A stretch of DNA of 64,000 bases from Podarcis erhardii (lineage: Eukaryota), in the NCBI GenBank assembly GCA_964252035.1, contig OZ176206.1; one strand, 5' to 3'. Below the pieces are notes generated by a model that had not been told where the DNA came from, did not search any database, and saw nothing but the letters and a program-made list of their open reading frames with translations. Of the stretch, positions 173 to 41,600 are shown piece after piece (the first letter of the stretch is position 1; each line of letters starts with the position of its first letter). Made by a program: the position numbers and the translations under genes.

Positions 173-13194
<13,022 letters not shown>

Positions 13195-16100: not shown

Positions 16101-17140
16101 TGCTTGGAGGCCAAGCCCCCATGGTGTTCTCTTGGACTTACTGCTACTATAGCTGCCATAGCAAACCTTATCCTCTCTCTTCCTCTCCAAACCTGCTTTT
16201 AATAGTCCCCACTCCATGATTTAGAATACATTCACAGGGTGGTGTTTGCCCACAAGTGATATAGAAGTCAATGGGTATGGCATGAGACACTCAGACTAAC
16301 ACAGAAGTCTTGACTTTCCAGGCCAGGGTATGGGTTGTATTCATGAATTCTGTGTCTTTAACAATATGCTACTTGCTCAATATAGAAAAGAAATACGACC
16401 CCCCCCCCAAAAAAATCCAGTAACATTTACATTTTAGGTGAAAATATTTACTGCCTGTCCTCCCCAATGTTAAAAAGTCTCTGGATTGTTTCCTCTTTCA
16501 TGTGAGAAATAAATGAAAAACATCACATGATGAACTGAGGGCGAGAAATGAGAACCCTTGCGCAATTAAGAAATGACCTCTGTTTTCTTTATAAAGCTAG
16601 GCTTGAACCAGTAAGCTTTATGACCTCCCTCTGCCCCCAAGTGAACAATCCTGTCCTCATGCACTGGAGAGACAAAACAGATAAGAAACACGAGAACAAA
16701 TGTTAATGGCTCCTTTAGCACCTCCATAAAACAGAGTTCAAGGAAATACACAGTTCGAGAAACAGTTGCAACATTATAATGGCATCTTCTAAACAGCTGC
16801 CCTTCAGTTTTGGTTTTTTTGGATTTTGTGTGTGTGTGTGTGTGCTGCAAAAAAATCTCCTGTGAAAATGCCAACAGTCACTCGAAACCTGATCGGCTCT
16901 CAAACATTCATGAACATGCAAACAAGGAAAAGCTCAGTATCAAATTTGTCTTTTCTGAATGTTGTTTTCACCCCTACTCGTTAGGCAAATAGAAGGGGAA
17001 AGTCTTCTGCACAAAGTGAAGTTGTGCGTGCTACAGTTTCCTTTAAAGGAAGAAAGAGACTATTGATTTGAAGTCTGGCACACGTTATGCTGTTTGGGTG
17101 AGGCAAAACATGACCTCTTCACCACCTCTACACATACCCT

Positions 17141-17265
17141 CTGGGAAATGGGAAATTAATAGCCAATAATAGTTCTTTATTGCTGCTTTCTTGACTTGGA
17201 ACCATGTTGGGAAATCTTCCCAATATAAGCCTCCTGGAGTGTCATTGGTCCCAGCAAGTATATAA
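17141..17265 (+). promoter_or_regulatory. Candidate ficolin core promoter
   Basis: TATATAA 17259-17265, CCAAT 17220-17224, ATTGG 17244-17248, CTGGGAA 17141-17147, immediately upstream of exon 1. Confidence 0.55.
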
Positions 17266-17314
17266 GGAGAGCAGGACAGGGAGACAGTAAATTGCACAGA
17301 GGAACAAGGAAGCC

Positions 17315-17405
17315 ATGCATCTGGAGCTGTGTTGCAGGGTTTTTGCAGTCTTGCTCTGTTTTCCCACCTGGATGGAGGCAACTGGTGATTCCAACAAATG
17401 CGCAG
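17315..17405 (+). CDS. FCN3: Ficolin exon 1, signal peptide
   Basis: agccATG good Kozak context; [30 protein letters not shown]; donor CAG|gtaaga; TATA box about 55 bp upstream. Confidence 0.8.
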
Positions 17406-18101
17406 GTAAGAGATTTTAATTTCTTGCCAGTAAGTAAAGCCATTTTATACCATGTCAGGCCAATGGTCCTGCCAGCTCCATATTGGCAGCTCTCCATGAT
17501 TCATATGGAGGGTGGGAGGAGAGTCTTCCCCAGTCGTACTTGGAGATGCCATGGTTGAGCCTGGGACCTTCTGCATGAAAAGCATGTGTTCCACAAATGA
17601 ACCATGGCTTCTTCCACCCTTGGAGAATGCTGGACATCACACAAAGATCATGATGGGAGGAGTGGTTTCTACATTTTTGTGAGTCGTTTTTACATACTTA
17701 AAGGTTGGCATATCCCTGGGTACACAGAAATATATATGCATGTAAATTATTGTTTTTTAAAAGCAAAACACCAAATGGTCTGATGAGGACCTTTGAACTT
17801 CTGAAAGCATTCATGTGTCAGATGAGATTTTGTGGGGTGGGTGAGGTGGAGACGGAAGAGGGAACTGGTGTGCTCAAGCCCTTAATAGTTTCTGGTAGAT
17901 AAACTAGGGTTGGAGGAATGTGAGCTGAGAGGCTAAATAATTCAGCTCCCAGAATTATTTCAGGAGGATGAAAGGGGGGACATATTTTCCAGCTGTTCAG
18001 AACCTCCACCCCAAGATATAGCAATAGGTTTCAATCCTGAGTCCTAGAAAGCAAGGCATCGGAGCCTGGGAAAGGGGAAAGATGACTGTTTCCCTTTCCT
18101 G

Positions 18102-18184
<83 letters not shown>

Positions 18185-21100
18185 TGGTTATAAGGTTTTC
18201 TGAAGCCCTGAGCAAAAGCATTCCTCTTAACAGGTGGGGATACACTGCAACATTTTGTTTTAGGTACCACCTGATATTTATTTATTTCTACCTTTCCCAC
18301 TTGATTTTCATCCGCCTCTGTGGAGTTGTGCTGTCCTTTGAATTGTGACACTGGTGCAGTACCGACTACTATTAGGCAAAGGGAGGTGACTGCCTCAAAC
18401 AGCAGATGTTAGGGCAATGGAAGCACCTGCCTGGCTGTTTTCCCCATGTCCCCCGGTTGAAACTTTCTCCTCTGATAGAGTTGTCAGTGTCACATGCCCT
18501 GCCCTATACCCCTAGATACTAAGCAGCCAGTCCTGGATCGTGGTCCTCTGCATAATGCCCAGGGGTGTAAGTGTTTACTGAACATAGCAGGGGTAAGGAG
18601 CTCCTGGTCTGTGGGGCAATTTTGGCCCAGCACAGGTCCCAATTTGGCCCGTGGAGCCATTTTCCTCAAACCATGCCCACCTGCCCCACACCTGGGCCAA
18701 TGTGTAACATCAGGTGTGGAGCAGGTTGGGATGCAGCTGGCACGGCTGCACATGCCAGTTCCCCATGGATAGCACAGCTGATCCTTGCAGAGAGAAAGGT
18801 TGCTCGCTGCTTGTCAGCTGATGGGCGGTGACTTCAAGCCTGCTGCATCAGGGAGGAACTGGATTGTGCAGCTGATCCCTACAGAAAGGGAAGTGTTGAG
18901 CATATAGGGATGGCAAAGTTCCTTGACCTGTGCTTCCCAATGACAGAATATCATGGTGAAATGAAAATGGGCAGTTCAAGGACACATTCCAGCCAGGCAT
19001 AAAAGAAGGTGTGTAGCTTGTTGAAGACTGATGAAGGCCAGAAAAGAGAGGCCTCGAGGGCCACATGTGAGCCTCCCCATTGTTGAAACAGGGTCTAATC
19101 TCAGGTGGACACTGACGTTAACATAGGGGGTGAAATACTTCATTCCCTATCTTTTCCCACAGAAGTGAAGATTGTGGGTCTTTTGGGTGATGAGAAGCTT
19201 TGCTTTCCTGAAGGGATGTCCTGGGTTTCCTGGAGTGGCAGGAACCCCTGAGAATCCTGGGAGCTGTAGTTTGTTAATGGTGCTGAGAGTTGTTAAGAGA
19301 CCCCAATTCTCCTCACAGAGCTGCCGTTTCCAGAGTTCCCTGAGAAGAGGCATTGATTGTAAAACCACTTTGGGGTTTCTAACTCTGTGAGGGGAGTAGG
19401 ATCTGTCCCACCTCTTAAAAACAAACATTCCAGATCCTAGATATGCCAAAAACAGAAATAAAGAGAAGCATGGCAATCTTCAGTTTAGCAAAGCCAGGGA
19501 TTGATTTTGGATGGCAGGTGTGAAACTTGATACCTGCAGCACTTGTTGGGAGGAACTTAGCCTGTAGACTCCCTTCGGTCTACCAGCTGACCTCATGACT
19601 ACAACATCAACCTAAGTTTTGTACCCTTCCCCCACTCCCCTATTTGCCTCAACTCTCTACCCCACCCTTTATGGGTGACATCTGGAGAACTGGAAAGTGT
19701 GCCACAAGTTTGTGACATTTGGTGAGTCCTAATCAAGGTATTAGGGACACGGGTGGTGCTGTGGGTTAAACCAGAGAGCCTAGGACTTGCCGATCAGAAG
19801 GTCAGCGGTTCGAATCCCCACGACGGGGTGAGCTCCCGTTGCTCGGTCCCTGCTCCTGTCAACCTAGCAGTTCGAAAGCAAGCGAAAAAGTGTAAGTAGA
19901 TAAATAGGTACCGCTCTGGCGGGAAGGTAAACGGCATTTCCATGCACTGCTCTGGTTTGTCAGAAGCGGCTTAGTCATGCTGGCCACATGACCCGGAAGC
20001 TGTACACCGGCTCCCTCGGCCAATAAAGCGAGATGAGCGCCGCAACCCCAGAGTCGGCCACGACTAGACCTAATGGTCAGGGGTCCCTTTACCTTTACCT
20101 TAATCAAGGTATTGCCCAATTGCGGGTTTTGGAATCATTTCGCCTTCAGTGTATTGTTACGATTTGCTTAGTAACAAGTTTTTTTTTTTAAATATCAGGT
20201 GATCGAGGAGATCTTTTGGCCCTCTGCCAATCCGGTGAGTTTTTTTCTTGCTTCTCTTGGGAAATGCACCCTCTGCCATCTAGTGGCTCAACTTTATAAT
20301 AATCCTCAAACTCTAATAATATAAAATCGCAAGGATGTTGTCGCTTTGCAGTTCAGTTTGCCCCAGACAGGTGGCACTTAGAACTACAGTGTGACGAGCT
20401 ACTGGGCTGTCCGGCAGGTGGACCAATGGACAGAGATGCAGGTCAAGGTAATGTGAGGAGGAGAGGCAGGTGGGCAGCTCAGGCGATTAACCCAGGTGAA
20501 GCAAAGGGGAGGGATCTGGAGAACAGAGATGAGGGTGGGCAGCCCAGGCAAGTAGCCCAGGTGAGGAAAGGATGAAGGAACTGGAGGACAGAGATGCAGG
20601 CAAGCCAGCAGGGGGCTCAGGTGAGTTGCAGAGACCTGGTGAGGTCCAAGGTTTTCTTTTGTGAAGTGCAAAGGGAGGGAGGAGGGTTGGCCAGGGAAGG
20701 AAGGTTGACAGAGTTCAAAGGAAGGGGGGCAGCAGTTGGTGAGCTGGAAAGGGAGGGTGTAGGGGGTTGGCGAGAGAAGCAAGTAGGGCTTCAACCCTAG
20801 TGTACTATATGTTGTTGTTTAGTCGTGTCCGACTCTTCGTGACCCCATGGACCAGAGCTCGCCAGGCACTCCTGTCTTCCGCTGCCTCCTGCAGTTTGGT
20901 CAAACTCATGCTGGTAGCTTCGTAAACACTGTCCAACCATCTCGTTCCTCTGTCGTCCCCTTCTCCCTGTGCCCTCAATCTTTCCCAACATCAGGGTCTT
21001 TTCCAGGGAGTCTTCTCTTCCCATGAGGTGGCCAAAGTATTGGAGCCTCAGCTTCAGGATCCAGTGAGCACTCAGGACTGATTTCCTTAAGAATGGATAG

Positions 21101-23120
21101 GTTTCATATTTTTGCTGTCTATGGGACTCTCAAGAGTCTCCTCCAACACCATAATTCAAAAGCATCAATTCTTCAGTGATCAGCCTTCTTTATGGTCCAG
21201 CTCTCACTTCCATACATCACATGGTACACAAAGACAACAGTGTACTATATAATGATCCACAAACTGCCCCCAAATACCTACACCATGGGTAGTCAACATG
21301 GTGCCACCAGGGATGATGGGAATTGTAGTCCAGCAGCATCTGAACGGCACCACGTTGCCTACCCTAATTGCTTATGTGACAGTAGTTCCTCAGGACTGCC
21401 ACGATAAGGAAGCGAGTCCATTGTGAGCTCTTCAAAGCCTCCCACAATTCTCCTTTCTTCAAAGGCATATGCGGACTTTGAAATCCCACAGCTTTTCTTC
21501 CTTCCTTTCATTCATTCATTATATATGGTTTAACATTCCCTTTTCGTGGTACGAAACGCGACTGAGCTGCTGATAAAATCCCAACATCATTAGGCAAAGC
21601 AGGGGCTGCTTCTAAATGCTTCAAAAGCCCCAGTGAATGAAGTTTCACATGCCTTATAAATGTAGAAGTGTTATAAAACGTAGAGATAAAAGGATGTCTC
21701 TTTTACCCAAGGGCCAGTTTAAAAATGTGGAGTAAAATTTGTAATCTGCATTAGCGACCTGTAGGAACACTTCTAGGCTAAAAGCAGACAGACTAAACAA
21801 GATCACTCTCACAAACACAAATAGCAAAATGAGAAACCCAGCTTTTGTGTGGACATTTTATAGTATACAATGTGAAAAAAGTGAGCTTTAAACTGTGTTG
21901 TAAGCAACAGTAATATTACATTAAACCAGCAGCTCCCAAACTTTTTTGTCCTCTGCCCCCTTGGTTCCACAAACTCATCCCCAGTGCTCCCTACCCCACC
22001 CTATAAAAATATTTATTCAGAATAGTGGTTTGGACAGCCCAATAGGGAAGATAATAACATAATAAAATTCACAACAGTCACAATTAATTGCACATTCATT
22101 CAAAATCCAATTAAAACCAATTAGTCAGATAATTCAACAAAACCAATGAACTTGATCCAGTGATCCCAGCTTTTCAAAATCTCATTCACACTTCCAGCAC
22201 TCCCCACCCTAGGTAATCCCCCCACCCCCGGGGGTGGTACCACCCTCTTTGGGAACCGCTGCATTAAACAAGTGAAAATGAACCTATGGAGTGGTCTTAA
22301 TGCACTGTCATCAATATCTGCAGGTTTTTTCATTGGTAGCACTGATGTTATGAAATTCACTCCCTGCTGGATAAGAGAGGCCCCCATCTGTATTGGCATT
22401 CTGCTGGCTTTCGAACTGTTTGCACAGGCATTCCTTTGACATCTTGACCTATTTAATTGGTGTTCTGGTTTAGCAGGATTTAATTCTGGATTTTAGAGTT
22501 GTTGTTTTTTATTATTATTTCGGTGTCATGACTTGGATTTTAGAGTTTTAATTGGATCCTTTTATTATGTGTTTTTATTCCAGATGCTTATATCTATCTT
22601 AATGTTTCTCTCATTGGTTTTTATACTTGTAAACAGCTTAGAAGCCTAATTTGGCATTAAGTGGCATATAAATAATAATCATATAATGACCGTAATTGGG
22701 AGCTGTGGTGGTATCCCTAGCTTGCTACATTTCCTGCCTCCATTGCCTTTCATCTTGCCTTTTGTCATTTGGCATATTCTCCCAGCACCAAGAAGCTGCA
22801 AGGAGCTGCTGAGCAAGGGGGAGTTCCTGAGCGGCTGGTACACCATCTATCTGCCAGGCTGCTGGCCCCTGAGGGTCTTCTGTGACATGGATACTGATGG
22901 AGGGGGCTGGCTGGTGAGTGGCTGCTTTGAGGTGAAGGCCCTGTATTGTTATTGGGATTTTTTGCTCCCGTTGGGTTTGATAATTTATTTATTAAACTTA
23001 TTCGCCGCTTGTCATGTAAACGGTCTCCTAGTAATTTGCACTTTAAAAAAACTTTTACACAAATAACATAGAGAAGAAAATTTATGTAAAACATTAACAT
23101 TCCATACAGCATGGGAAAAT

Positions 23121-23173
<53 letters not shown>

Positions 23174-24493
23174 TTACAGCAATGGAAAACTTTGTAATTA
23201 TGCTAACTTAAGAACATGGCAGTTTTTCCAACCCACTAACCAGCAGATTAAAATAAAAACACAAACACTGATCCTCCTGCACTCCGTTGCCCAGAAGTTG
23301 GCCGTCTTAAAAATCCCCTTCCCATACCTTCCAACACAACGCAGCCCAAATCCAGGATCTCATTTTCCAGGTCCGCATTTCCATGCCTGTGAAACCTAGG
23401 GTGGGAAGTCTCTTGCACTCCAAATGTTTCTGGATTCGAACTCTTAGCAGCCCTATCAGGCATGGTCAATAGCTAGGGGTGCTGGGATGTGAAGTCAAGC
23501 AAAAACTAGGACGCCATAGCCCCTGCCACTCAAACACTGGATGTGAGAGGCTGAATGAGAAAACAATACATTTACAGGCGATGTACTCATTTTTTTCTGC
23601 TATGTTTGTTTCTATATCTCTTTCTCAGGTGTTTCAGAAGCGGTTGGATGGGTCTGTTGATTTCTACCGTACCTGGAATGACTACAAGAAAGGCTTTGGG
23701 AACCAGCTATCAGAATTCTGGCTGGGCAACGAAAACATTCATCTCCTGACACGGGAGGGTAATCCCGCCTTTGATCTGGGGATAAGGGTGGAGGGGAAAT
23801 TAGATTTGGTTTACAATGTAAGCTGAAGTTGCACAGCCATACCTCGAAATCCACACTTCTCTGAATTTTGCAGTGCAGTTCTCCAGTTAAGTAATGTTAC
23901 AAAAAGTGCATGTGCAAGGGTAAAGTCTACATACAAATGGGGTAAAGTCTGCATACAAATGAATGTATTAGAAACAGCATACTATTGGGGAAAATAGTGT
24001 GCATAAATGTGTATATTCGCACACAAATGCATTCATTCATTCAAAACTGATGTCAACATGTGGGGAACTGAACTTAAGACTGGAAATCTGAAAGAAACCA
24101 GAAAGGACTTAGGTGCCAATCCTCATCTGGAAAAACATTCTTTCCAGGCCAGTAGCAGGGACCTGCTATGCTATTGTGAGCCTCTGGGAGTCAAAAGAGA
24201 GCTGTGTTTTTATTCCATCACAACAATAATATTGGATTTATTTGCAGCAGCCTATCTGTGCAGGATTTAAAAATACAATGTCTCCACTACCCTCTTCAAC
24301 CCCACTCTTCTAATAGCAGCCCCCAGTTCAAAATTTTAAGACACCCAGTGATGTGTTTTGATATGACAGGCGCAAGAACCATTTTTTAAGGCAGCCCTGT
24401 TTAGGGAAGCTTTTCATGTTCAATGGTTATTGTATTTTAGTGTTTTGTTGGAAGCCACCCAGAGTGGAAACCCAGCCAGATGGGCGGGGTATA

Positions 24494-24575
<82 letters not shown>

Positions 24576-27500
24576 TTCAGCCTGAGGACCACGTCCCCAA
24601 CCTTCTAGAGGCTGCTTTGGAAATATTTCTTGTGCCACATCGCACATAAGTTTTTCAAGTGTGCAAAAGGCAAAGTTGTGCTGAATTTCTGTCCTCTTTT
24701 CCTTAGGGGAGCACCAGCTGCGTGTGGACTTGGTAGACTTTGACGACCGCAAAACCTTTGCTCATTACCAGTCCTTCCAGCTCAGGGGAGAAGAGGAGAA
24801 GTATCAGCTTGTCCTGGGGCAATTCCTGGGTGGCACTGCAGGTGAGGGACTTCAAACCTGCTTTCCACACGCACTGTGGCCTGGTTTGCATGCCGCTTTA
24901 AACCAGGAGTGGGGAACTGGACCTGGTCAGAGGCATTTAGTGCATATACTGGAGATAACGGATCTCTGATATCAGATGGTATCAGGTGACTGACAGGTCG
25001 GCATGGTTTGCCTAAAATGGTCGTCTGGGCCAAATGCAGAGGCCTGGTGGGTGGGCCTAATTAGGCCCACAGGCCAAAGGCTCCCTGCTGCCATTTTAAA
25101 TTATAGTTAAGCTTACCTATGGTTTGAACCATAGGTACAAACTATCTACAGCAAACCTTTTTAGAACTAAAATACCCAGCAGATGAAGTTAGACAACAGA
25201 TCAACAGAGCCAGACTGATACCCAGAGAGAACTTGCTGCAAGACAGACCCAAAAAAGAAAATAACAGAACACCTCTAGTCATCACATACAGCTCCCAAGT
25301 TAAAACAGTACAACGCATCATCAGAGATCTACAACCTCTCCTGGACAATGACAGTTCTCTTTCTCAAGCTCTGGGAGGAAGACCTTTCATTGCCTCCAGA
25401 CAGCCCCCCAATCTTAAACAACTCCTAACCCACAATAATACTATAACCAGACTTAACACGGACACTGGCACCAGAGCCTGCAATAAACCCAGATGCCAAC
25501 TTTGCTGCCACATACACCCGGACAACACCATTACTGGCCCCAACAACATCACACATACCATCTCGGGACTATTTAATTGCTCATCGTCTAACATTGTGTA
25601 TGCCATAAAATGCCAACAGTGTCCTTCAGCTCTCTATATTGGACAAACAGGCCAGACCTTACGCCAAAGAATAAACGGACATAAATCCGACATCAGGAAC
25701 CACAAGACAGAAAAACCAGTAGGAGAACACTTCAATCTCCCAGGACATTCTATACAAGATCTCAAAGTAGCTGTTCTATTACAAAGGAATTTCAGAAATA
25801 GACTGGAAAGAGAAGCTGCTGAATTGCAACTTATCACCAAACTTAAAACTATGGAGAGACCTGGTTTGAACAAAGACATTGGATTCTTATCTCATTATAC
25901 ATGACAAAGCCATTTTTCACCTTCTCACCCCTTGCTTTTTCCTGTTAGACCTATTGCAGTCGTTAAGAGTCGTCAACAGGCTCATCGCAGCTATCTGCCA
26001 ATCACCCATTCCCACCACCCTTCTGAGTAATACCCCTCCCTACCTTCTCACTATATAGAAAGGTCCGGTGACTTCTGTTTCAGTGTATCTGAAGAAGTGT
26101 GCATGCACACGAAAGCTCATACCTAGAACTAACTCAGTTGGTCTTTAAGGTGCTACTGGAAGGAATTTTTTTATTTTGTTTTGACTATGGTTTGAAGGTG
26201 AATGTACAGTGCGTTGGTGCATCTGGTGAGATTTCTCTTCCCTGCTCGCTCTGCTACACTGCTGTGAGCTAAGTCATCGTTTTAACTTGGGCTCATGGTT
26301 TGTCTCTCTCCAAACAAACTAAGAACTTTAAGCAAGGTTTGTTCTTGGTTTGTTTGTAGGGGGGAAATAAACCACAACTCTGGGTTTGGATGAAACACAG
26401 AGCCAAACTATGGCTTAGCACAGTGGCAGCAGGAGCAGGGAGGAATGAAGGGATATAACAGGCCAACAGTTACCCGCCCCTGCTCTATTCTAGCCTGCTG
26501 CTGTCAGGTATATGGTGAACATGGTGAATCAAGGATGATCCAACAGCTGTTCTACATGGAATTGGAGGGGAGGCAAATCTTGTCCTTTTCCTCAGGCAGC
26601 AAAATATATTGAGCTGGCCCTGTCACTTTGAAGACCAACATATTTAGTATTCACTCATTCTAGACCTGGGATTGCTGTTTTGTTACTCCAGCAATGGCTG
26701 CTGTTGGAAATGTAGCAGCAGAGATCATCCTGTGTGCAGCTAAAGGGTTAATTCTGTTACTGTTATAGTCAGCTAGCCAAGAGGGGAGGTGTGGCTTAGC
26801 AACTAGGCAGAGCAGCTTGATGTTTGCTGAGGTAGCACATGCTCAGATTGGTTATGTTGACCTGAGGGAGTTTTCCTCAGTATGTTTGGTTGACGTACAA
26901 GGCTTCTGCCAAAAGAAAGAAAAACCTCTGTTCCTTTCTTGTCACATTATACACTGTTTTTGTTCAATTTCCTCAGTAAACGGTTATCAGGATTTCTCTT
27001 TTCACTGCACTCCATTTGCATTATTTAAGTGACTTAGCTAGGAGCTGCCAGGTCTCCAGCTGCTGACAGACGCATCACTGGCACCTTACCTGCCCCCACC
27101 CGTTCCTAGAGCTACCATTTAAATTTCCTACAGTGCCCTGGAGCCGTACTGCATTGGGGGCACTGTGGGAAATTAAAGTGGTTATTCTCACACCCAGCAG
27201 CCGCTCAATGCTGATCAAAGGGCTGCTTCTCCTCCCAACCAGATGAGTCCACTAGGGCCTGATGACATGGAAAAGGCACTTTGACCGAAGCTCCCTCAGA
27301 CCCAGAGGCACTGATGCTGTGGGGGGCGGGAAGAGAAATGTAATGGGCAGCAGACAAAGGAAAAAAGAGAGCACTTTTACACCACCTCTTTCTGCTCTGC
27401 AGGTGACTCCATGACCTTTCACAGCGGGCAGCGTTTTTCCACCCATGACAGTGACAATGACACCGGGACACAGAACTGCGCTGTCACTGTGCATGGAGCT

Positions 27501-27644
27501 TGGTGGTATCTCAACTGCTATAGGTCCAACCTGAATGGAGGCTATCCTATTGGTGATCGGAAAGGGCAGACCTATGGCATTGACTGGGCAACTGGCAAGG
27601 GCGTTGGCACCTCCTACAAGCGCACAGAGATGAAGATTCGCTAA
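17315..27644 (+). CDS. FCN3: Ficolin-3-like secreted lectin (join 17315-17405, [19163- damaged collagen exon], 20199-20234, 22786-22913, 23629-23758, 24707-24841, 27403-27644)
   Basis: Signal peptide exon, neck exon and four fibrinogen-domain exons ([71 protein letters not shown]). The last exon resembles FCN3 more than FCN1/2, and the gene sits between CD164L2 and MAP3K6 as human FCN3 does. Confidence 0.88.
18104..18182. repeat. Compound microsatellite (CT)n(CA)n; a similar one at about 23124-23173
   Basis: Direct reading. Confidence 0.95.
19163..19251 (+). pseudogene. FCN3: Ficolin exon 2 (N-terminal/collagen start), frameshifted and truncated by a repeat
   Basis: cccacag|[21 protein letters not shown] is in the entry frame, while [16 protein letters not shown] is in the +1 frame. 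The entry frame stops at TGA 19249-19251, and sequence after ACCCCTG runs into a MITE with no donor. Confidence 0.75.
19743..20100 (+). mobile_element. Full-length Sauria SINE
   Basis: tRNA-like head (GGTGGTGCTGTGG...GGTTCGAATCC), (ACCTTT)n tail, 13-bp TSD TAATCAAGGTATT (19730-19742, 20101-20113). Confidence 0.9.
20199..20234 (+). CDS. FCN3: Ficolin neck exon (36 bp, phase 1-1)
   Basis: atatcag|GTGAT...TCCG|gtgagt; [12 protein letters not shown], analogous to FCN3 GEPGDPVNLLRCQE. Confidence 0.8.
20811..21220 (-). mobile_element. Bov-B (RTE) LINE 3' fragment
   Basis: Minus-strand [22 protein letters not shown], the Bov-B ORF C-terminus, plus a CAA-repeat tail. Confidence 0.88.
21927..22261. 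mobile_element. hAT-type MITE
   Basis: TIRs CAGCAGCTCCCAAAC / CTTTGGGAACCGCTG; perfect 8-bp TSD CATTAAAC. Confidence 0.85.
22786..22913 (+). CDS. FCN3: Ficolin fibrinogen-domain exon A
   Basis: cccag|CACCA...CTG|gtgagt; [42 protein letters not shown]. Confidence 0.95.
23629..23758 (+). CDS. FCN3: Ficolin fibrinogen-domain exon B
   Basis: ctcag|GTG...GAGG|gtaatc; [43 protein letters not shown]. Confidence 0.95.
24387..24575 (+). repeat. L2 3' end with an (AAT)14 tail abutting an inverted (TAT)12 tract
   Basis: Direct reading; L2 terminal motif CCCAGAGTGG...GATGGGCGGGGTATAAAT. Confidence 0.85.
24707..24841 (+). CDS. FCN3: Ficolin fibrinogen-domain exon C
   Basis: ccttag|GGGAG...GCAG|gtgagg; [44 protein letters not shown]. 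Confidence 0.95.
25129..26184 (+). mobile_element. 5'-truncated Penelope-like retroelement (GIY-YIG endonuclease end plus pseudo-LTR)
   Basis: ORF 25233-25904 with C-x4-C-x2-C and VYAIKCQQC...LYIGQT GIY-YIG motifs; flanked by CTATGGTTTGAA duplication (25117-25128, 26185-26196). Confidence 0.9.
26085..26122 (+). ncRNA. Minimal type I hammerhead ribozyme motif (Penelope-associated)
   Basis: GTAT-CTGAAGA-A-GTGTG CATG CACAC-GAAA-GCTC-ATAC: conserved core, 5-bp stem II, 4-bp stem I, palindromic AGCT in place of stem III. Confidence 0.75.
27403..27644 (+). CDS. FCN3: Ficolin terminal exon
   Basis: ctgcag|GTGAC...CGCTAA; [19 protein letters not shown]...[10 protein letters not shown]; AATAAA at 27883 and 28012. 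Confidence 0.95.
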
Positions 27645-29479
27645 AGAGATCCCATTTGAGGCCTAGAAAGCAACCAAAGGGAATGAGTAAAGCAAAAATT
27701 AAGCAGCTATATGGGTGTTTGTGTGTCTCTTTATTTTGCATGAGGGATTATTCTGCTTCCAAAATCCGTTCAAGCTTTTAATAGGTGAGGGAGAGGCTCC
27801 ATTAGGGCAAAATGTTTACTGTCCATATTGAGGATGCCTAACAAGCAAAACATTTCAAATCACAAAGGCCAAAATCAATAATAATAAAAATACAATCCAG
27901 CCCAAAGTACCTGGTTTATTCAGCAAAATACTCAAATATTGAAACTGCGGCTAGCTATTTATTTATTTGCTTGTTAGCTACTTGATCAAAGAGCTCTCTA
28001 AGCAGTGTGAAAATAAAACACACCTAAAGTCCACCACTGCCAGTTAGAATACTTAATATTTGGCAACCTTTGTAAATGGATATGTCTGACTTTGTTTTGA
28101 GTTAAATGAAGCAGTCCCCTCTAGCCTAATTCTGGCAATATTCACACCATACATTCAATGCACTACAATACCTCTTTAAACGGTCATGACTCCCCACAAA
28201 GAATTCTGGGAGCTATAGTTCATTAATGGTGCCGACAGCTGTTAGGAGAGCAATATTCACCTCCAAAACCTACAGTTCCCAGAGTTCCCTGTAAAGTGGG
28301 ATTGTTTGTTGAACTGCTCTGATAACTGTAGCTCTGTGAGGGGAATCGGGGCCTCCTCACAGCTATCAGTACCCTTAGCAAAATACAGCTTCCAGAATCC
28401 TTTGAGGAAAGCCATGGCTGTTTAGTAGTGTAGTGCTTTAAATGGCTGGTGTGAACCTGTCTGCTGTGACTGGCAACAGCTTTCCAAGGTTTCAAGTGGA
28501 GTCCTTTCGTTTTCCGGTCCTGATTTTTTGCGGGAGCTTTTAATAGGAGAGAGCAGAGGACTGGATGTCCTCGACCTCAAGGTAAGTCTCTATCCAGTTC
28601 ACTTTGGTTGCCAAGGGAGGTTATGTAGGGATATTAAAGTGTTTGACAAGGCAATTTTCAACCATGGGTCATATCTGGATGAGAAAGAGGCATTAATAAA
28701 GCTAGGGCTGTAATCAGGAAGACCGTGAGTGCATTGGTATTGGAAAAGTGAGTCAAAAAGTCTTCAGGCCTATCCATTCTCTGTTTTCATACTGCCATTA
28801 ACCTCTTTACTTTTTCCACCAGGTATTTCCTTTTGTTTTCTGTTGTCAGACTGTGGTTATCTACTTGACTTATATCGGTTTTATACCATCTTAGCTGATA
28901 GTTCCCACCCAAGCATTCTGGGAATTGTATTTTGCTAAGGATGCTGACAGTTCCCTGTTAGCAGCCTCTAGCACTGGCCTCCCATCACACAACAGCAATT
29001 ATCATAGTTCTGAGGGAAGTAGTAATACCTGTTAAAAGTATACTAACAAACATATTGTTATGAGCACCCCGTTTCTCTGAGTGGTGAGAAATCCCAGGGG
29101 TTGTGGAACAGCACTTAACCAATTTTGTTTCCTTTTAGGGAGGAGATCACTGGAGACTCCTGGGTGGTTTGTAATATTTACGTTTATTTACAAATTTATT
29201 TAGTTACTTGATTTCACAGCATTTCTTTAGCGCTTGATTGTAACTAAAACTCTTGAGTGGTTTAACAAAAAAGACTCCCAGCAACATTAAAACATTACAA
29301 GTATCAGTTAAAACAACAACAACAGGTAAAAACAAGTATTAAGAACATTCAAAATATCATTAAAATCAGCAATGCCAAAAAGAAATTAAAACACATGTCT
29401 GGATTCTGCGGATAGGCTCCATGGTTCATTTTGCATAACATAAATCCCTGCATATTTTACATAAACTAAAACATTCAGT

Positions 29480-33928: not shown

Positions 33929-34270
33929 GTAAAGGTAAAGGGACCCCTGACCATTAGGTCCAGTCGTAGCCGACTCTGGGGTTGCAGCACTCATCTCGCT
34001 TTATTGGCCGAGGGAACCGGCGTACAGCTTCTGGGTCATGTGGCCAGCATGACTAAGCCGCTTCTGGCGAACCAGAGCAGTGCATAGAAACGCTGTTTAC
34101 CTTCCTGCTGGAGCGGTACCTATTTATCTACTTGCACTTTTGATGTGCTTTCTAACTGCTAGGTTGGCAGGAGCTGGGACGGAGCAACAGGAGCTCACTC
34201 CGTCACAGGGATTCGAGCCGCCAACCTTCTGATCAGCAAGTCCTAGGTGCTGGTTTAACCCACAGCGCCA
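33929..34270 (-). mobile_element. Sauria SINE
   Basis: Reverse complement of the 19743-20100 copy. Confidence 0.88.
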
Positions 34271-34399
34271 TTAAACACCAGCTGCATACACACCATACTT
34301 TTTAAGCACTCCCCCAGAGAATCCTGGGAACTGTAGTTTGCAAAGAGCTGGGAATTAAAACTCTGTGAAAGGTAAACTACAGCTTCCATGATTCTCGGG

Positions 34400-35600
34400 G
34401 GCAGAATGTGCGCCCGGTGTGCGCCCTAGGAGCACACGTGTTGCCATTCTACTTTGCTGTATTCTTTAGGTGGCGCACATGCCGGATATCGTCCTTACTC
34501 GAGGTGGGAGCGGCAGGGGGGAAAAGGAGCCGGACGCGGGTGCCAGGAGGAGGCGGCACCGCGGAGCAGACGCCATGGAGACGGCTCTGCGTGTGCGCTC
34601 GCTCGCCGCTCTCCTCCTCCGCCCCCTCTTGCACAATCGCCCCGGGGGCGCTGGCGCTGGTCTCGGGGTGTTTGCGCCAACAGGAAAGGCGGCGGAAGAG
34701 CGCGCCCGCCGCGCCTCCCTTCCCTGCGCTCCGCTCCCGGCTGCGGGGCATTTCTCTCCCGCTGCGCGCCTCGGCGTCGATCCCTAGCAGCGCAGCACAG
34801 GAAGGAGAAAAATGCCCAGCGAGACCCACCCACCTCGGGAACTCGTCGAGGAAGTTTGGCGGGGCGGGGCGGGGCTTGGCGATCCCACGTGGGGCTGAGA
34901 TGGACCAAGTTTGGGAGCTGTAAATAACCCTAAAATCGGAGGCGGGCGGAAAAACAAACGCAACTTTTCTGCCTGTTGGTTCGTTTGGGGCGAATCCACG
35001 CAATGGCTCGTTTGTTTCTTTAAAAGAGGCGCTTTCTGACTCCGAGGGAATCGCAGCATGGAAGAGGACAGCAGCAAGCTGGGAAGCGCCGGGAGTCTCT
35101 GGCAGGACCCTTTGGCGATCGCGCTCACCCCCAGCAAGCCAGTCTCTGCAGGGAGCCAGGGCGCCCGAGGGGGCGGCGGCGGCGGCGGCAGCGGCAGCAA
35201 CGGGGGCGGCAGCAGCAGCGGCGGTGGCAGCGGTAGGGGCCGACCCCTGAGCGTGGTTTACATCTTCCCCGAGGATCTGGAAGAGCCTCTGCCTCTCCAA
35301 TGCCTGCGGGAAGCCTGCAAGGAGGTCCCGGCGACGGAGCTGACGACGCTGCCTTTTGGCACCGTGGCGCTGGGGGACACCGCGCCCCTGGATACTTTCT
35401 ACAACGCAGGTGAGTCCCTGCAAACGCAGCCTCTGCCTCGGCCGGCTAGCGGTTCCGTCAGTTCACCTGGGAAGGAAACCTGCCCAGGGCAACTCCGTGG
35501 GAGAGCAGAGGGCATTGGCAAGTCAGAGCTTAACGCCGCGGTTTTCGTCCGGGTTGTCTCGGGCGGACCGAGACGCTGCAGATGTGCTCAGATGTTGCCA
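34400..35600 (+). promoter_or_regulatory. CpG island / MAP3K6 promoter and exon 1 region
   Basis: Abrupt rise in GC and CpG content; tandem GGGGCGGGGC (Sp1-type) boxes at 34861-34875; overlaps the first coding exon. Confidence 0.8.
35058..35409 (+). CDS. MAP3K6: MAP3K6 exon 1
   Basis: [19 protein letters not shown]...RPLSVVY...[20 protein letters not shown]; donor GCAG|gtgagt. Confidence 0.88.
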
Positions 35601-38600
35601 GCGTCCACCTCTGCAGGGCTCCTCTGCATGTCCCCACGAGGGTTGGAATGTCGTCCATTTAGTGATTTTCTACTCGCACTTATAAGCAGCTGTTAGTGTC
35701 CCGAAAGACAGCCGGCAAGCCTGGTGAAATGGAAGTAGAATTCTTCTGCAAGTTTGAGTCTATTGGTTCAGGACTCAATGTTGACAAAGGTCCCCCCTCC
35801 CGTAGGTGTTCAGTGTATTGCACACTGACTGGCAGCTGCTCTCTGGGGTTTTGGGCAGGAGTCTCTCTCAGCCCTACCTGGAGATTCTGGGGATTGAACC
35901 TGGGACTTTCTGAATGCAAAGCAGATGCTCTACCACTGACCTATGGCCTATCCCTAAAGGCTATGAAGGCTGTGTTGTTATTATCAGTTACAGCTGTTTT
36001 AAATGATCATCATCTACACATTTTATGATTCTCACAGAAACTTTGCACAGGCTGTACCAATTGTGTTTTGTGATGTTTGGGTCATATGGTTAATTCTACT
36101 CCACCCCAAGCATACCTATCAGAATCTTAGAGTTGGGAGGGTTTTAAGGGTCATTTAGTCCAACCCTTCAATGCAGAAACCTCGCCTAGAGCATCCATGA
36201 CAAGATGGCCATCCAACCTCTGCTTAAAAACCTCCAAGGAAGAAGAATCCACTGTCTCTCTAGGGAGTCTTTTCCACTGCTGAACAGCTCTTACTGTCAG
36301 AAAGTTTTTCCTAGTGTTTAGTCGGAATCTCCTTTATTGCAACTTGAAGCCATTGGTTTGAGTCCTATCCTCCAGAGCAGGAGAAAATAAGCATGTTCCC
36401 TCCTCCATGTGACAGCCCTTAAGATATCTGAAGATGGCTACCATATCTCCTCTCAGTCTCCTCTTTTCCAGGCTAAACATACCCAGCTCCTTCAAGCACT
36501 CCTCATAAGGCTTAGTTTCCAGACCCTTGATCATCTTGGTTGTCCTCCTCTGCACACCTTCCAGCTTGTCAACAGCCTTCTTAAATTGTGGTGCTCAGAA
36601 TTGGACACAGTATTCCAAGTATGGTCTGACTAAGGCAGAATAGAGTGGTGCTATTACTTGCTTTGATCTGGACACTATGCTTCCATCGATGCAGCCTAGA
36701 ATAACATTAGCTTTTTTTGCTGCTGCATCACACTGTTGGCTCATGTTGATCTTGTGAAGGATTCCAGGATTCAAAGTAACTGTGACTGTGGTTCAGAACA
36801 GAACAATTAGCTGGATCACCTAATGCAGGATCCTTGCAGGAAGGCATGATACAGCTGTTCCCAATGCTAAGTGTGGGGAGGGAGGGAATGATGGAGGGAG
36901 AGGCGCACACACACAGAGAGACGTCAACAGACAGGCAGACAGAGGAGGGAGCTATGCATATGAGTGGAAATTGCACTGTGGACAGAGCAGAAGCCAAGTA
37001 ATTTTCATGGCAGTCACAAAGGGTGTGAGTAGAACACCTTTCTAGTGAACAGCTTGCCTAACAAGTTGAGCAGCTTGGGCAAGTAGCTACTCAAGAAGCT
37101 GGATGACACATCCTATACTTCAAAAGGCCCCCATTTACCAGGGACAACCTAAATTTTTTGGTACCTGCTTATGATCAACTGCTGTCCCTTGTCTTTCGGG
37201 GATGCCTTTTAAATATTTGTTCAAGAGCACAAATGGATGACTGTTGCCTGTCTTTAGGTTTCAGCCCCATCCTCATGATCTATAGAAGTTAAATCTCTGT
37301 GGAGATGAGGGAGATGGGCCGATACCTTTTGAGGTCCAGCTCCGAGAGCCTTCTGGCGGTTCCCTCACTGTGAGAAGTGAAGTTACAGGGAACCAGGCAG
37401 AGGGCCTTCTCGGTTGTGGTGCCTGCCCTGTGGAACGCCCTGTCAGATGTCAAGGAAATAAACAACTATCTGACTTTCAGAAGACATCTGAAGGATGAGG
37501 GAAGTTTTTAATGATTGATGTTTTAATGTATTTTTAATATTTTGTTGGAAGCCACCCAGAGTGGCTGGGGAAACCCAGCCAGATGGACGGGGTATAAATA
37601 GAGTATTGTTGTTGTTGTTGTTATTTATTAAACAGTGTTCGAAATTAGGCAGGCACCAGGTGCATTGTGACCAAGCGAAGATGCCTGGGCACTAGGATGG
37701 TGCCTGACATCCCCACCCCAGGAGGTACATGCCTGGGCATCATTGGATCTGGATTGCTTTCACATACTAGCAACACATCCTGTAGAATTCTATTTGCACA
37801 ATCAGAATGAATTTCAGGAACCAAAATTATTTTTCTGCGCAACCTGAGCAGGATTGGTGAACATTATACAGTGGTACCTCGGGTTAAGTACTTAATTCGT
37901 TCCGGAGGTCCATTCTTAACCTGAAACTGTTCTTAACCTGAACTTTAGCTAATGGGGCCTCCCGCTGCCGCCGCGCCAGTAGAGCACGATTTCTGTTCTC
38001 ATCTTGAAGCAAAGTTCTTAACCTGAAGCACTATTTCTGGTTTAGCAGAGTCTGTAACCTGAAGTGTATGTAACCTGAAGCATGTGTAACCTGAGGTACC
38101 ACTGTAGTTAATTGTTGTAGCTTGTCTTCACTTACCCCACCCCACTCCCCTGTTCACAGTTGTGAAGAATATTATTAAGTTATGAATGATCTGTGTCACC
38201 ATTAAGAATAAAAGGTAGGAATAGGCCAATACATATATGTGTTTGGATTGTCCCTGGATCAAGTGACTTTTCTTCTTTAAGTTCTTAGATTTCTTAACCT
38301 ATATCAAGGTTGTCATCTGAACTAGCCAGATATTTATCTATCATTTGAAAAATAAGACTTGAGAGCCACCTTGCCCCAAAATTGCAACTAAACACTCTGT
38401 TTTGGTGACTGTAACCTTGGTTTAAGAAACCATTTGGCGCCTGGCTTTCTGACTTTCTAACACTGGAATTCATAACTATCTTGTTTCTTGAGAAAAACTG
38501 TGCTTTGATGCATTTTCGCCCAACTCGGCTTCAATCCAAATAGAGAGAAGGGACAACCTTGCTGTGTTTTAAGCTGATGGTATGTATACAGCCCCATATC

Positions 38601-41600
38601 AGCAGCCCTTGCCAACTACCTGTCTCAGAAAAGATTGAACCCAAGAAACAAGATGGGAGGTGTGAGAACAAACTGAAGGATGGGGGCAAGCTAGTGCTCT
38701 CTGTGTCTTCTTTCTCCCTCCCTGCAGATGTGGTTGTGGTGGAGATGAGCAACAGCCTGTGCCAGCCCTCGCTCTTCTATCACCTGGGGGTGAGGGAGAG
38801 CTTCAGCATGACCAACAACATCCTCCTGTGCTGCTACACTGATTTTCCGGAGCTGCAGGCTCTCCGGGTGAGTCGGGGATGCAATTCAATTCTACAGGTG
38901 GAGTCTGTTCATGGAGATTGCTTTGAGACGCTGGACTACCCAGAAAAAGGGCCACTTAATCAGATCAGAGGAACATCTGTAGGGCAGGAGTGGGCTGCCT
39001 TTAGACTTGCTAAACAGTTGGGATTTGAGGAAACCCTTCATGCAGGGGAATAGTTAGGCAGTTTTAGAATCTGGACTTTCTGGGGCATCTGTCTTTTGGT
39101 AGAAATATGTGCAGTGTCCGTCCCGCCCGCTTTCTTCAAAATAATGGTCAGCCAGCCCTGCTGCATTTGTAGTGCCCTCCTGCTCATTTTGTGGGTGGTG
39201 GTGGGGAATCCTGGACCTTTGCCCCAAAGTCCTGCTCTGATATCATCACTGACTTGATGATCAAGACACTTAGAATCTGCTCTGAAAGATTGAAGTGAGG
39301 ATAGGAGGAGTTTCTTAAATGTTTCATTTGCAGCGATTGTTCTGCTGAAATGTTCCCCCAAGTGTGTTTTTGTGTGTAATGGAGAACACGGGTGTGAGTG
39401 CATGTATGTGTGGCAGATGACAGATTTTGTCAATGGAAAAAAAACAAAGTTGACGAGTATCCTGTAGGATACGGCCCTTAGAGGGAGATTTACCCCCAGG
39501 GCAACTTTTGTTTGTTTGATTGATTGATTGATTGATTGATTCAAGTGCCTTCTGTCCTGCCCATCCTCCAGTCTGCAGGACAGGGTGGCTAAGAACTTTA
39601 TAGATGAACTTTATCATAGAAGATAAAGTCATAACAGCAACCATTCAGCAACAAATAATATCAGTAAAACTGCACCTAAAAATAGTTTATTCCCTTCTAC
39701 GAATGCTTGATGGGTATAAAATATCTGCAGCCATCTTGCAAAAAGAAGCCTTCCTCCATCTCCCACTGCTGCCCAGATACAGATTGTGTCAAGCAAGCAG
39801 GCAAGACCTTCAACATGTAAGGCTTAAATCAGTCCTACAGCAATCTAGCTATAGGCCAGTGGAGAGTGGGGAGAGACAGATTCTCTGGGAAGCTGCTTTA
39901 TGCTGAGTCAGACTATTGGTGCATCTAGCTCAGTATTATCTCCAAAGGGGTATTTCTAAGCCCAGCTTGGAAATTTCAGGGGTTGAATTTAGGACCTTCT
40001 GCATGCAAAGTGTGTGCTCTCCGAAGAAGCTGGTGCTTTCACTTTCAAAATTGTGAAAGTTTTTCTCTTAACAGCTACTTGCTGCATTAGGATGCAGTTC
40101 TGTGCATGCCAGAAGTCCTCTTCTGACCTTAATGCTTCTGTATTACCTAACATGGAAGTGGGGAGACCCTTTTGTAGCCCAGTCCCCTATGGTCCACCTG
40201 AACAGCATGACCACCTGTCCCCACAGAGCCTTTCTGTATGCAGGTATATGCACAAAGGTTCCCATGCGACCCAGGACCCCAATCACCCAGATTTCCAGCT
40301 CACATGGAATCCTTCTTTTGTACAGCTGTGCATGTACAAAAGGCCCAGATGGTCAAGATGTTCACACAGACTCTATGGGGCAGTGCTACCTGGTACATTC
40401 CCAGTCCCATACTGAGTAACATAGAAGCACTGATGACTGAAGAGGGCAAGAGCAGGGATGAGGAACGCTTTTCAACCTGAGGGCCACTTTCCTTTATGGA
40501 CAACTTTTGTACAGTAGGCTAGTTTCTACACACAAACACACCAACCTTTTCCCTCCATTTTGGTAAGCAAGATGTATTGTAAGAGTTTAAAGACACATTC
40601 TAGCCAGGCAAATGCACTCAAGGAGGTTGCAGAGCCGAGCCTATAAGGGGTGTGGTCTGGGGAGAGTCCCAGTAGCCAGACAGAGAAGCCTGGGGGGTTG
40701 CATTCAGCATCCAGGCTTGACATTTCCTGCCCCACTTACAACCCATTTAGAGCAAAAGACCCTCTTCAGATTTGGCACATGCTGCACTGCATAAGGTAGT
40801 ACATTGTAGAAAAGCTGCATCATCTCACACAGATGATGTGAAGAAGAAGAGGAGGAGTTTGGATTTGATATCCTGCTTTATCACTACCCGAAGGAGTCTC
40901 AAAGCGGCTAACATTCTCCTTTCCCTTCCTCCCCCACAACAAACACTCTGTGAGGTGAGTGGGGCTGAGAGACTTCAAAGAAGTGTGACTAGCCCAACGT
41001 CACCCAGCAGCTCCACGTGGAGGAGCGGAGACGCAGAACCCGGTTCACCAGATTACAAGACTACCGCTCTTAACCACTACACCACACTGGCTCTCAGTGC
41101 AACATATTAATGCATGATAACACTTGCAAGAATTGCTTTGGATTCCCCTTTGGGGGGTTGCCTGTGCGTAGGAGCAGCAAGCTCTAATGAGTTTGTGGTT
41201 ACTCTGCATGATCTTGTACTAACAGCTATCTAATGTGATAAGGAAACATCGCACGGCTGCAGCATGGCAAGAGAGCAGCTTCCGTAGAGAGCTCATTATC
41301 TTACTGTTACCTACATGTGACCAAACCCTTGTGCTCTTCATTAGCGTATCAGAAGTAAAGACCACTCCAGCTTCGTTCTGTGTAGTCGTGCAACCCATCC
41401 AGATCAGGATTGATGTTTTGTCTTCTAAGCACATATGGAAGCTATCAGGGGAAGAATTGATGCGCCCCTGGTGCAAGTATGATAAATGGCTTAATAGTGT
41501 GATCCTATGCATGCCTAGGGCTAGCCGATCAGAAGGTCAGCGGTTCGAATCCCCACGACGGGGTGAGCTCCCATTGTTCGGTCCCTGCTCCTGCCAACTT

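Follow-up and report, generated by a model that had tools for sequence, protein, structure and literature searches.

Decayed collagen exons and a retained reading frame in the ficolin-3 gene of lacertid lizards

We analyzed a 64,000-nucleotide (nt) stretch of contig OZ176206.1 from Podarcis erhardii (GenBank assembly GCA_964252035.1), hereafter called the window, which contains a ficolin gene. By position and sequence, this gene is the lacertid orthologue of ficolin-3 (FCN3, also called H-ficolin). Ficolins are defined by a collagen stalk and a fibrinogen-like head; the head is responsible for recognition, and the stalk for oligomer assembly and for docking of MASP, calreticulin and CR1. In the window, the two exons of the collagen region occur as damaged relics, the remaining exons form an uninterrupted frame of 253 codons, and the same lesions were detected in other lacertids. 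Taken together, the data suggest that lacertid FCN3 is probably a conserved, collagen-less lectin that is uncoupled from complement. The stalk has been genetically removed across this clade and the head kept, which, if the protein is made, would amount to a natural test of a ficolin head without complement activation.

Decay of the collagen exons

Intact orthologues of 309 amino acids (aa) are present in Anolis sagrei, Pogona, Salvator, Elgaria, two geckos and turtles. When mapped on the genomic loci of Anolis, Phrynosoma, Elgaria and Sphaerodactylus, the ancestral exons measure 91, 123, 45, 36, 128, 130, 135 and 242 nt, and the 91-nt exon 1 was found in all nine loci compared. Ancestral exons 2, 3 and 4 each begin and end in phase 1. 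In a protein alignment, the gap in the lacertid protein corresponds exactly to the 56 residues encoded by exons 2 and 3. The positions of all features in the window are collected in Table 1.

Exon 2 is entered through a CAG acceptor at 19160-19162, and its entry frame runs into a TGA stop at 19249-19251. The Gly-X-Y frame of this exon is shifted by +1, starts at 19202 and extends over four triplets. The initial annotation of this DNA had described the stop and about four Gly-X-Y triplets, which direct reading confirmed, and had attributed the shift to an extra T. An alignment that included the intact exon 2 from four further squamates had the same outcome and places the extra base in the T run at 19199-19201 (AAGC-TTGCC in a gecko versus AAGCTTTGC in the window).

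The exon 2 relic runs into a copy of a miniature inverted-repeat transposable element (MITE) lacking its left arm, as had been recognized before. Comparison with the other copies in the window showed that the outer ~30 nt of the left terminal repeat are absent from the abutting copy, and the exon and the MITE overlap by ~10 nt (CCCCTGAGAA). It is possible that the 3' end of exon 2 was lost by a deletion into the MITE, or that the MITE was inserted first and decay followed. A single microhomology deletion between exon and MITE had been proposed as the origin of the collagen-less gene; such an event is possible, but as an account it is incomplete, since exon 3 was lost separately through splice-site decay. 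A segment at about 19463-19480 weakly resembles the ancestral end of exon 2 (ATAAAGAGAAG versus ATAAAAGgtaag), but neither local nor MAFFT alignments of it were convincing. A megablast comparison of the exon 2 relic with phage records returned no match.

Exon 3 had been overlooked. The initial annotation reported neither a donor nor a further collagen exon ahead of the neck exon, whereas alignment with exon 3 of Elgaria, Anolis, Phrynosoma and Sphaerodactylus located a relic of this exon between the MITE and the neck exon. The former CAG acceptor now reads TGG (19672-19674), the relic has acquired many substitutions and a net 2-nt change in length, and a GTGAGT donor is still found at 19722-19727. 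A local alignment of Anolis exon 3 had suggested a different placement, at 19439-19491, which was rejected because the multi-species alignment puts the exon at the site given in Table 1.

Ancestral exon 3 encodes a GDMGPPGKQGPKGEQ-type sequence, in which squamate PGKQGP aligns with primate PGKMGP. According to our residue count, the lysine in the primate motif is Lys47 of mature H-ficolin. This residue was reported to be key for the binding of MASP and calreticulin (Lacroix 2009, as cited in PMC5845983). Since the exon with PGKQGP appears as an unspliceable relic, the counterpart of Lys47 is predicted to be absent from the lacertid product. Among the sampled species whose collagen region is intact, the teiid Salvator merianae is the closest relative, and its FCN3 reads GPPGEQGP instead of the GPPGKQGP of other squamates, so that in this single predicted sequence a Glu takes the place of the Lys47 counterpart. 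If this one sequence is representative, loss of MASP binding may therefore have preceded that of the collagen exons.

Our lacertid sample comprised six species of one tribe: the species of the window, P. muralis, P. lilfordi, P. raffonei, Lacerta agilis and Zootoca vivipara. A comparison with related lizard loci had been suggested earlier, and it revealed that the extra T, the MITE junction and the loss of the exon 3 acceptor are shared. The extra T is common to all five other assemblies. P. muralis, P. lilfordi and L. agilis also share the exon 2/MITE junction; at this site the MITE is partly deleted in Z. vivipara and has been removed by a large deletion in P. raffonei. The dead exon 3 acceptor was found in every species that retains the relic (P. 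muralis, P. lilfordi, L. agilis and Z. vivipara, besides the window). Because these lesions are shared across genera, the loss is older than the common ancestor of Podarcis, Lacerta and Zootoca.

Decay of the relics is still going on, independently in the different species and in the manner of intron sequence. The exon 2 relic of Z. vivipara has suffered further deletions of 5 nt and 136 nt, the exon 3 relic of L. agilis carries an 18-nt insertion, and the donor of the exon 3 relic in P. lilfordi has changed from GT to GG. In P. raffonei, a deletion of ~960 nt that starts right after the extra T has taken the rest of exon 2, the MITE and exon 3, and the 253-codon gene is intact in this species.

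Preservation of the remaining reading frame

The neck exon and the four exons of the fibrinogen-like domain (A-D) have canonical splice sites. All junctions of exons 1-4 are in phase 1, and therefore a direct splice from exon 1 to the neck exon is in frame. The initial annotation had calculated 762 nt and 253 aa for this splice, and direct translation gave the same result, 253 aa plus a stop codon. In the predicted product, the signal peptide is followed by ~20 mature N-terminal residues, which form a tail with two cysteines, and then by the complete fibrinogen-like domain. Exons A-D cover positions 2-219 of the 221 positions of Pfam Fibrinogen_C (PF00147), and residues 37-253 align end to end with the crystallized 221-residue fragment of human ficolin-3 (2J5Z). 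The 253-aa protein has no Pfam Collagen match; A. sagrei FCN3 has one. Frame-disrupting lesions and lost splice sites were absent from the six exons of this model in all six species, and all lesions fall in the two exons that are skipped.

Models of 253 aa for this gene are already public, under three ficolin names. The collagen-free database models of P. muralis (XP_028594515.2, 'ficolin-3-like'), P. lilfordi, P. raffonei ('ficolin-2-like') and Z. vivipara ('ficolin-1') match the exon 1-to-neck splice, and this junction was predicted by three annotation efforts (NCBI, the P. lilfordi submitters and the UniRef entry for P. muralis). None of the names that annotators have given to this one gene signals the missing collagen region. 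The database model of L. agilis is odd (329 aa), and the canonical 253-codon frame is intact in its genome. The protein encoded in the window differs from all these models, and its introns diverge by ~4% from those of each Podarcis species.

The 253-codon frame, the start codon and the ten splice sites are kept in six of six lacertids. We estimated neutral branch lengths from 4,930 intron columns (tree length, 0.172 substitutions per site) and simulated neutral evolution under a simple substitution model. The probability of no premature stop in the six species was 0.006, that of keeping the 20 splice nucleotides was 0.034, and the joint probability was 0.0003. The 762 coding nt contain no indels, versus 9.0 expected from the introns when all clean small indels are counted. 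Over the same tree, the relic exons accumulated at least 5 indels in 139 nt.

Codon branch models were fitted with self-written maximum-likelihood code, of which only the one-ratio and the lacertid-only estimates were checked against IQ-TREE. The one-ratio omega, i.e., the ratio of nonsynonymous (dN) to synonymous (dS) rates, was 0.262 with our code and 0.258 with IQ-TREE, and the lacertid-only estimates agreed too. A dN/dS analysis of the fibrinogen exons had been proposed along with the initial annotation. For the fibrinogen domain as a whole, omega in the lacertid crown was 0.46, which is below 1 (p = 0.0085) and above the background value of 0.15 (p = 0.0005). Exons A-C had a crown omega of 0.19 (background, 0.18), below 1 with p = 0.0003; these exons are under purifying selection equal to that in collagen-bearing orthologues. 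The signal peptide and neck together gave 1.66 (background, 0.78), with neither test significant; in every lineage they evolve about neutrally. Among the six lacertids there is no variation in the counterparts of Cys235, Tyr236, Tyr254 and Val264, in the D-x-D-x-D Ca2+ loop or in the seven mature cysteines; the residues of the S1 ligand pocket were taken from the list in PMC6379837.

Predicted product and alternative explanations

On our reading, both collagen exons became inactive on the branch ancestral to Podarcis, Lacerta and Zootoca. What disabled exon 2 was the 1-nt insertion together with the disappearance of its 3' end and donor at the MITE; exon 3 was disabled when its acceptor was lost. 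With these exons dead and the junctions in phase 1, exon 1-to-neck splicing would be the only way to a productive mRNA. The product would be secreted, would probably form non-covalent trimers through the fibrinogen domain, and might bind carbohydrate or acetylated ligands through S1. It would form neither a collagen triple helix nor higher bouquets, and would not bind MASP, calreticulin or CR1 via the collagen lysine. With the docking lysine lost, recognition would be uncoupled from activation of the lectin pathway. Possible roles are those of an agglutinin or opsonin that acts via other partners, of a competitor of other ficolins, or a new role. A secreted lectin with only the fibrinogen domain had already been considered in the initial annotation. 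This idea is now better supported by the kept frame and splice sites, by the constraint on exons A-C and by the death of the exon with the Lys47 counterpart, but the ligand-binding exon D evolves at an omega of about 1.

Several further observations weigh against a conserved lectin. For the whole coding sequence, the crown omega was 0.67 (background, 0.21) and not below 1 (p = 0.13). Exon D, which includes the ligand site, gave 0.96 (background, 0.12) and was above background with p = 4e-6. As dS is similar in all parts of the gene, this increase is an increase in dN, and it would also fit a loss of ligand-binding constraint. Likewise, the raw indel argument (P = 1e-4) had to be toned down after low-complexity filtering. 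Only 2.5 indels (1.2 of them frameshifting) are expected once homopolymer and microsatellite contexts are left aside, and the probability of finding none is then 0.09, or 0.29 for frameshifts; on its own, the indel argument is suggestive only. It should also be noted that the acceptor of exon 2 is perfect and the donor of the exon 3 relic is good in this species, so some transcripts may include a stop-containing exon of 559 nt. In a short-fragment search for transcript-derived (Logan) proteins spanning the exon 1-to-neck junction, only the UniRef entry for P. muralis was found, and no Logan contig.

The same omega values, the low conservative indel expectation and the lack of a transcript-derived protein in that search would be in line with a unitary pseudogene in slow decay. 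In this case, loss of the stalk made the gene useless, and the 253-codon frame survived by chance and was annotated as a protein. There is a precedent in the FCN3 pseudogene of rodents (Endo 2004, as cited in PMC6379837). Nevertheless, we consider a pseudogene unlikely, given the joint neutral probability of ~0.0003 for keeping frame, start codon and splice sites in six species, the omega of exons A-C, the distribution of indels between relic and coding sequence, and the invariance of all cysteines, S1 pocket and Ca-loop residues. In particular, the young pseudogene suggested in the initial annotation is inconsistent with lesions that are shared across genera and with a frame that is intact in six species.

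Alternatively, the gene might be functional but repurposed, with its pocket under diversifying selection since the uncoupling from complement and an RGD motif gained in the Podarcis tail, so that its product would resemble MFAP4 or tachylectin-5 and not a decoy ficolin. Exon D omega is up eight-fold with dS unchanged. A branch-site test was significant (2dlnL = 13.1, p = 0.0003) and flagged codons 196, 214 and 230, of which 214 and 230 adjoin the S1 residues Cys235-Tyr236 and Tyr254. However, the signal is gone in an analysis without codons 196 and 230. These two codons have multi-nucleotide changes, a known cause of false positives in this test, and its result was therefore rejected as firm evidence for positive selection. 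Positive selection and relaxation cannot be separated for exon D. As for the motif, the neck in the window and in three Podarcis species contains RGD followed by LxxL, and in a BLASTP alignment the RGD and the following Cys are in register with an MFAP4-like RGD and Cys. Lacerta and Zootoca, however, lack the motif and have GDPGYLL. On the lacertid background one substitution, from Pro to Arg, is enough to create it, and because of this the Podarcis RGD may have arisen by chance. Overall, we regard repurposing as set out here as quite improbable. A broader version, in which lacertids as a family shifted from a complement-activating ficolin to a soluble MFAP4- or tachylectin-like lectin free of collagen, recognition was permanently uncoupled from MASP, the residues lining S1 diversified under selection and RGD(LxxL) was added in Podarcis, is offered as a tentative possibility that is itself doubtful; if true, exon loss would here have rewired a sensor of innate immunity in a natural experiment that can be dated.

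Finally, an assembly or sequencing error that made the frameshift and hid the collagen exons might be suspected from the short T run and from the assembly gap elsewhere in the window, but the comparison across species refutes it to near certainty: five other species, each with an independent assembly, share the extra T, P. muralis, P. lilfordi and L. agilis share the MITE junction, and these three as well as Z. vivipara show the loss of the exon 3 acceptor.

Collagen-free lectins with a fibrinogen domain are already common, and an FCN3 pseudogene is known in rodents. No paper on a lizard ficolin without collagen turned up in full-text literature searches. Provided that the protein is made, lacertid FCN3 would be a dated example of domain loss enabled by phase-symmetric collagen exons.

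Genomic context and comparison with known systems

The ficolin gene lies between a CD164L2-like gene (MGC-24 family) and a MAP3K6-like kinase gene (ASK family), both in the window and in every related locus that we fetched. The order CD164L2, FCN3, MAP3K6 is also the arrangement around human FCN3. These flanks, together with ficolin-3 (2J5Z) as the top match in PDB, identify the gene as the FCN3 orthologue. With exon D alone as query against PDB, the top match was ficolin-3 (E = 2e-29, versus 4e-24 for ficolin-2), which was clearly ahead of ficolin-1 as well. With the whole fibrinogen-like domain, 2J5Z leads narrowly (E = 8.6e-93 versus 1.3e-91), and the alignment to it is free of gaps over the entire domain. 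The nearest named proteins in a database search were likewise ficolin-3. An orthologue search with exon D alone against a representative library reached only distant or fragmentary representatives, and the orthologues were obtained through intermediate queries.

Table 1. Features of the FCN3 locus and its surroundings in the window
Feature	Position	Strand	Description
Assembly gap	9982-10181		
CD164L2-like gene, 3' part	10182-13194		upstream of the ficolin gene
Exon 1	17315-17405	+	91 nt; start codon, signal peptide and beginning of the mature protein with one Cys (NKC); phase 1 at its end
Collagen exon 2 relic	19163-19254	+	ancestral length 123 nt; acceptor intact, extra T, no donor left
MITE copy abutting the exon 2 relic	19251-19438		homology to other copies in the window starts at 19245-19251
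Collagen exon 3 relic	19675-19721	+	47 nt; ancestral length 45 nt
tRNA-derived short interspersed element (SINE)	19743-20100		in the relic intron just after the exon 3 relic; 13-nt target duplication TAATCAAGGTATT at 19730-19742 and 20101-20113
Neck exon	20199-20234	+	36 nt, both ends in phase 1; its homologue in A. sagrei is exon 4 (36 nt)
Fibrinogen-like domain exon A	22786-22913	+	128 nt
Fibrinogen-like domain exon B	23629-23758	+	130 nt
Fibrinogen-like domain exon C	24707-24841	+	135 nt
Open frame with GIY-YIG domain	25128-25901	+	258 aa; in the last ficolin intron
Fibrinogen-like domain exon D	27403-27644	+	242 nt including TAA; Ca2+ loop and S1 ligand pocket residues
Copies related to the SINE	about 33929-34270, 41513-41842, 41954-42279		
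MAP3K6-like kinase gene, start	35058-37711		downstream of the ficolin gene

The SINE in the relic intron is absent from all five other lacertid loci, and related copies occur elsewhere in the window. The GIY-YIG domain of the open frame in the last intron was detected with Pfam (E = 9e-6), and the frame presumably belongs to a fragment of a Penelope-like retroelement, which it resembles. Penelope-like elements carry hammerheads. An Rfam scan of 17000-28000 gave no match at gathering thresholds. The start of the MAP3K6-like gene lies in a GC-rich stretch (0.59 GC at 34001-36000). Among the other squamate models, the ficolin-3 isoforms of Hemicordylus capensis (232 and 236 aa) have no signal peptide and begin within or downstream of the collagen region; either the annotation is partial, or the 5' part of FCN3 is damaged in a second squamate lineage.

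The closest known counterparts of the lacertid gene are human ficolin-3 (Hakata antigen) and the intact squamate orthologues, with 309-aa examples in Anolis sagrei, Pogona, Salvator and geckos. They share with it the locus and flanking genes, a domain that aligns without gaps, an S1 pocket of the CYRSNLNG type, the Ca2+ loop, the cysteines, the signal peptide and the neck exon. What the lacertid protein lacks in comparison is the 56-residue block, i.e., the N-terminal EVK..GC segment with its second cysteine, ~13 Gly-X-Y triplets and the PGKxGP motif. The recombinant trimeric domain of H-ficolin (2J5Z) is matched end to end by the lacertid protein from residue 37 onwards. In contrast to that construct, the predicted lacertid protein would be a natural one, with ~14 extra N-terminal residues that include one more cysteine.

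The rodent Fcn3 pseudogene is likewise a case of lineage-specific degeneration of FCN3. Unlike in rodents, only the collagen exons have decayed in lacertids, and the rest of the gene is in frame and constrained. MFAP4 and tachylectin-5A have the architecture of the predicted lacertid protein, in which a short tail with Cys links the signal peptide to the fibrinogen-like domain and neither collagen nor coiled coil is present, and the RGD in the Podarcis tail aligns with that of MFAP4. However, they have no shared descent with it beyond the domain family, and the likeness would be secondary, brought about by exon loss. Finally, collagen-skipping FCN3 isoforms have been predicted in mammals (255 aa in Fukomys and 228 aa in Erinaceus) and exploit the same phase-1 symmetry of exons. 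These isoforms are optional and are predicted beside an intact gene, whereas in lacertids the collagen exons are dead and skipping them appears to be the only productive option.

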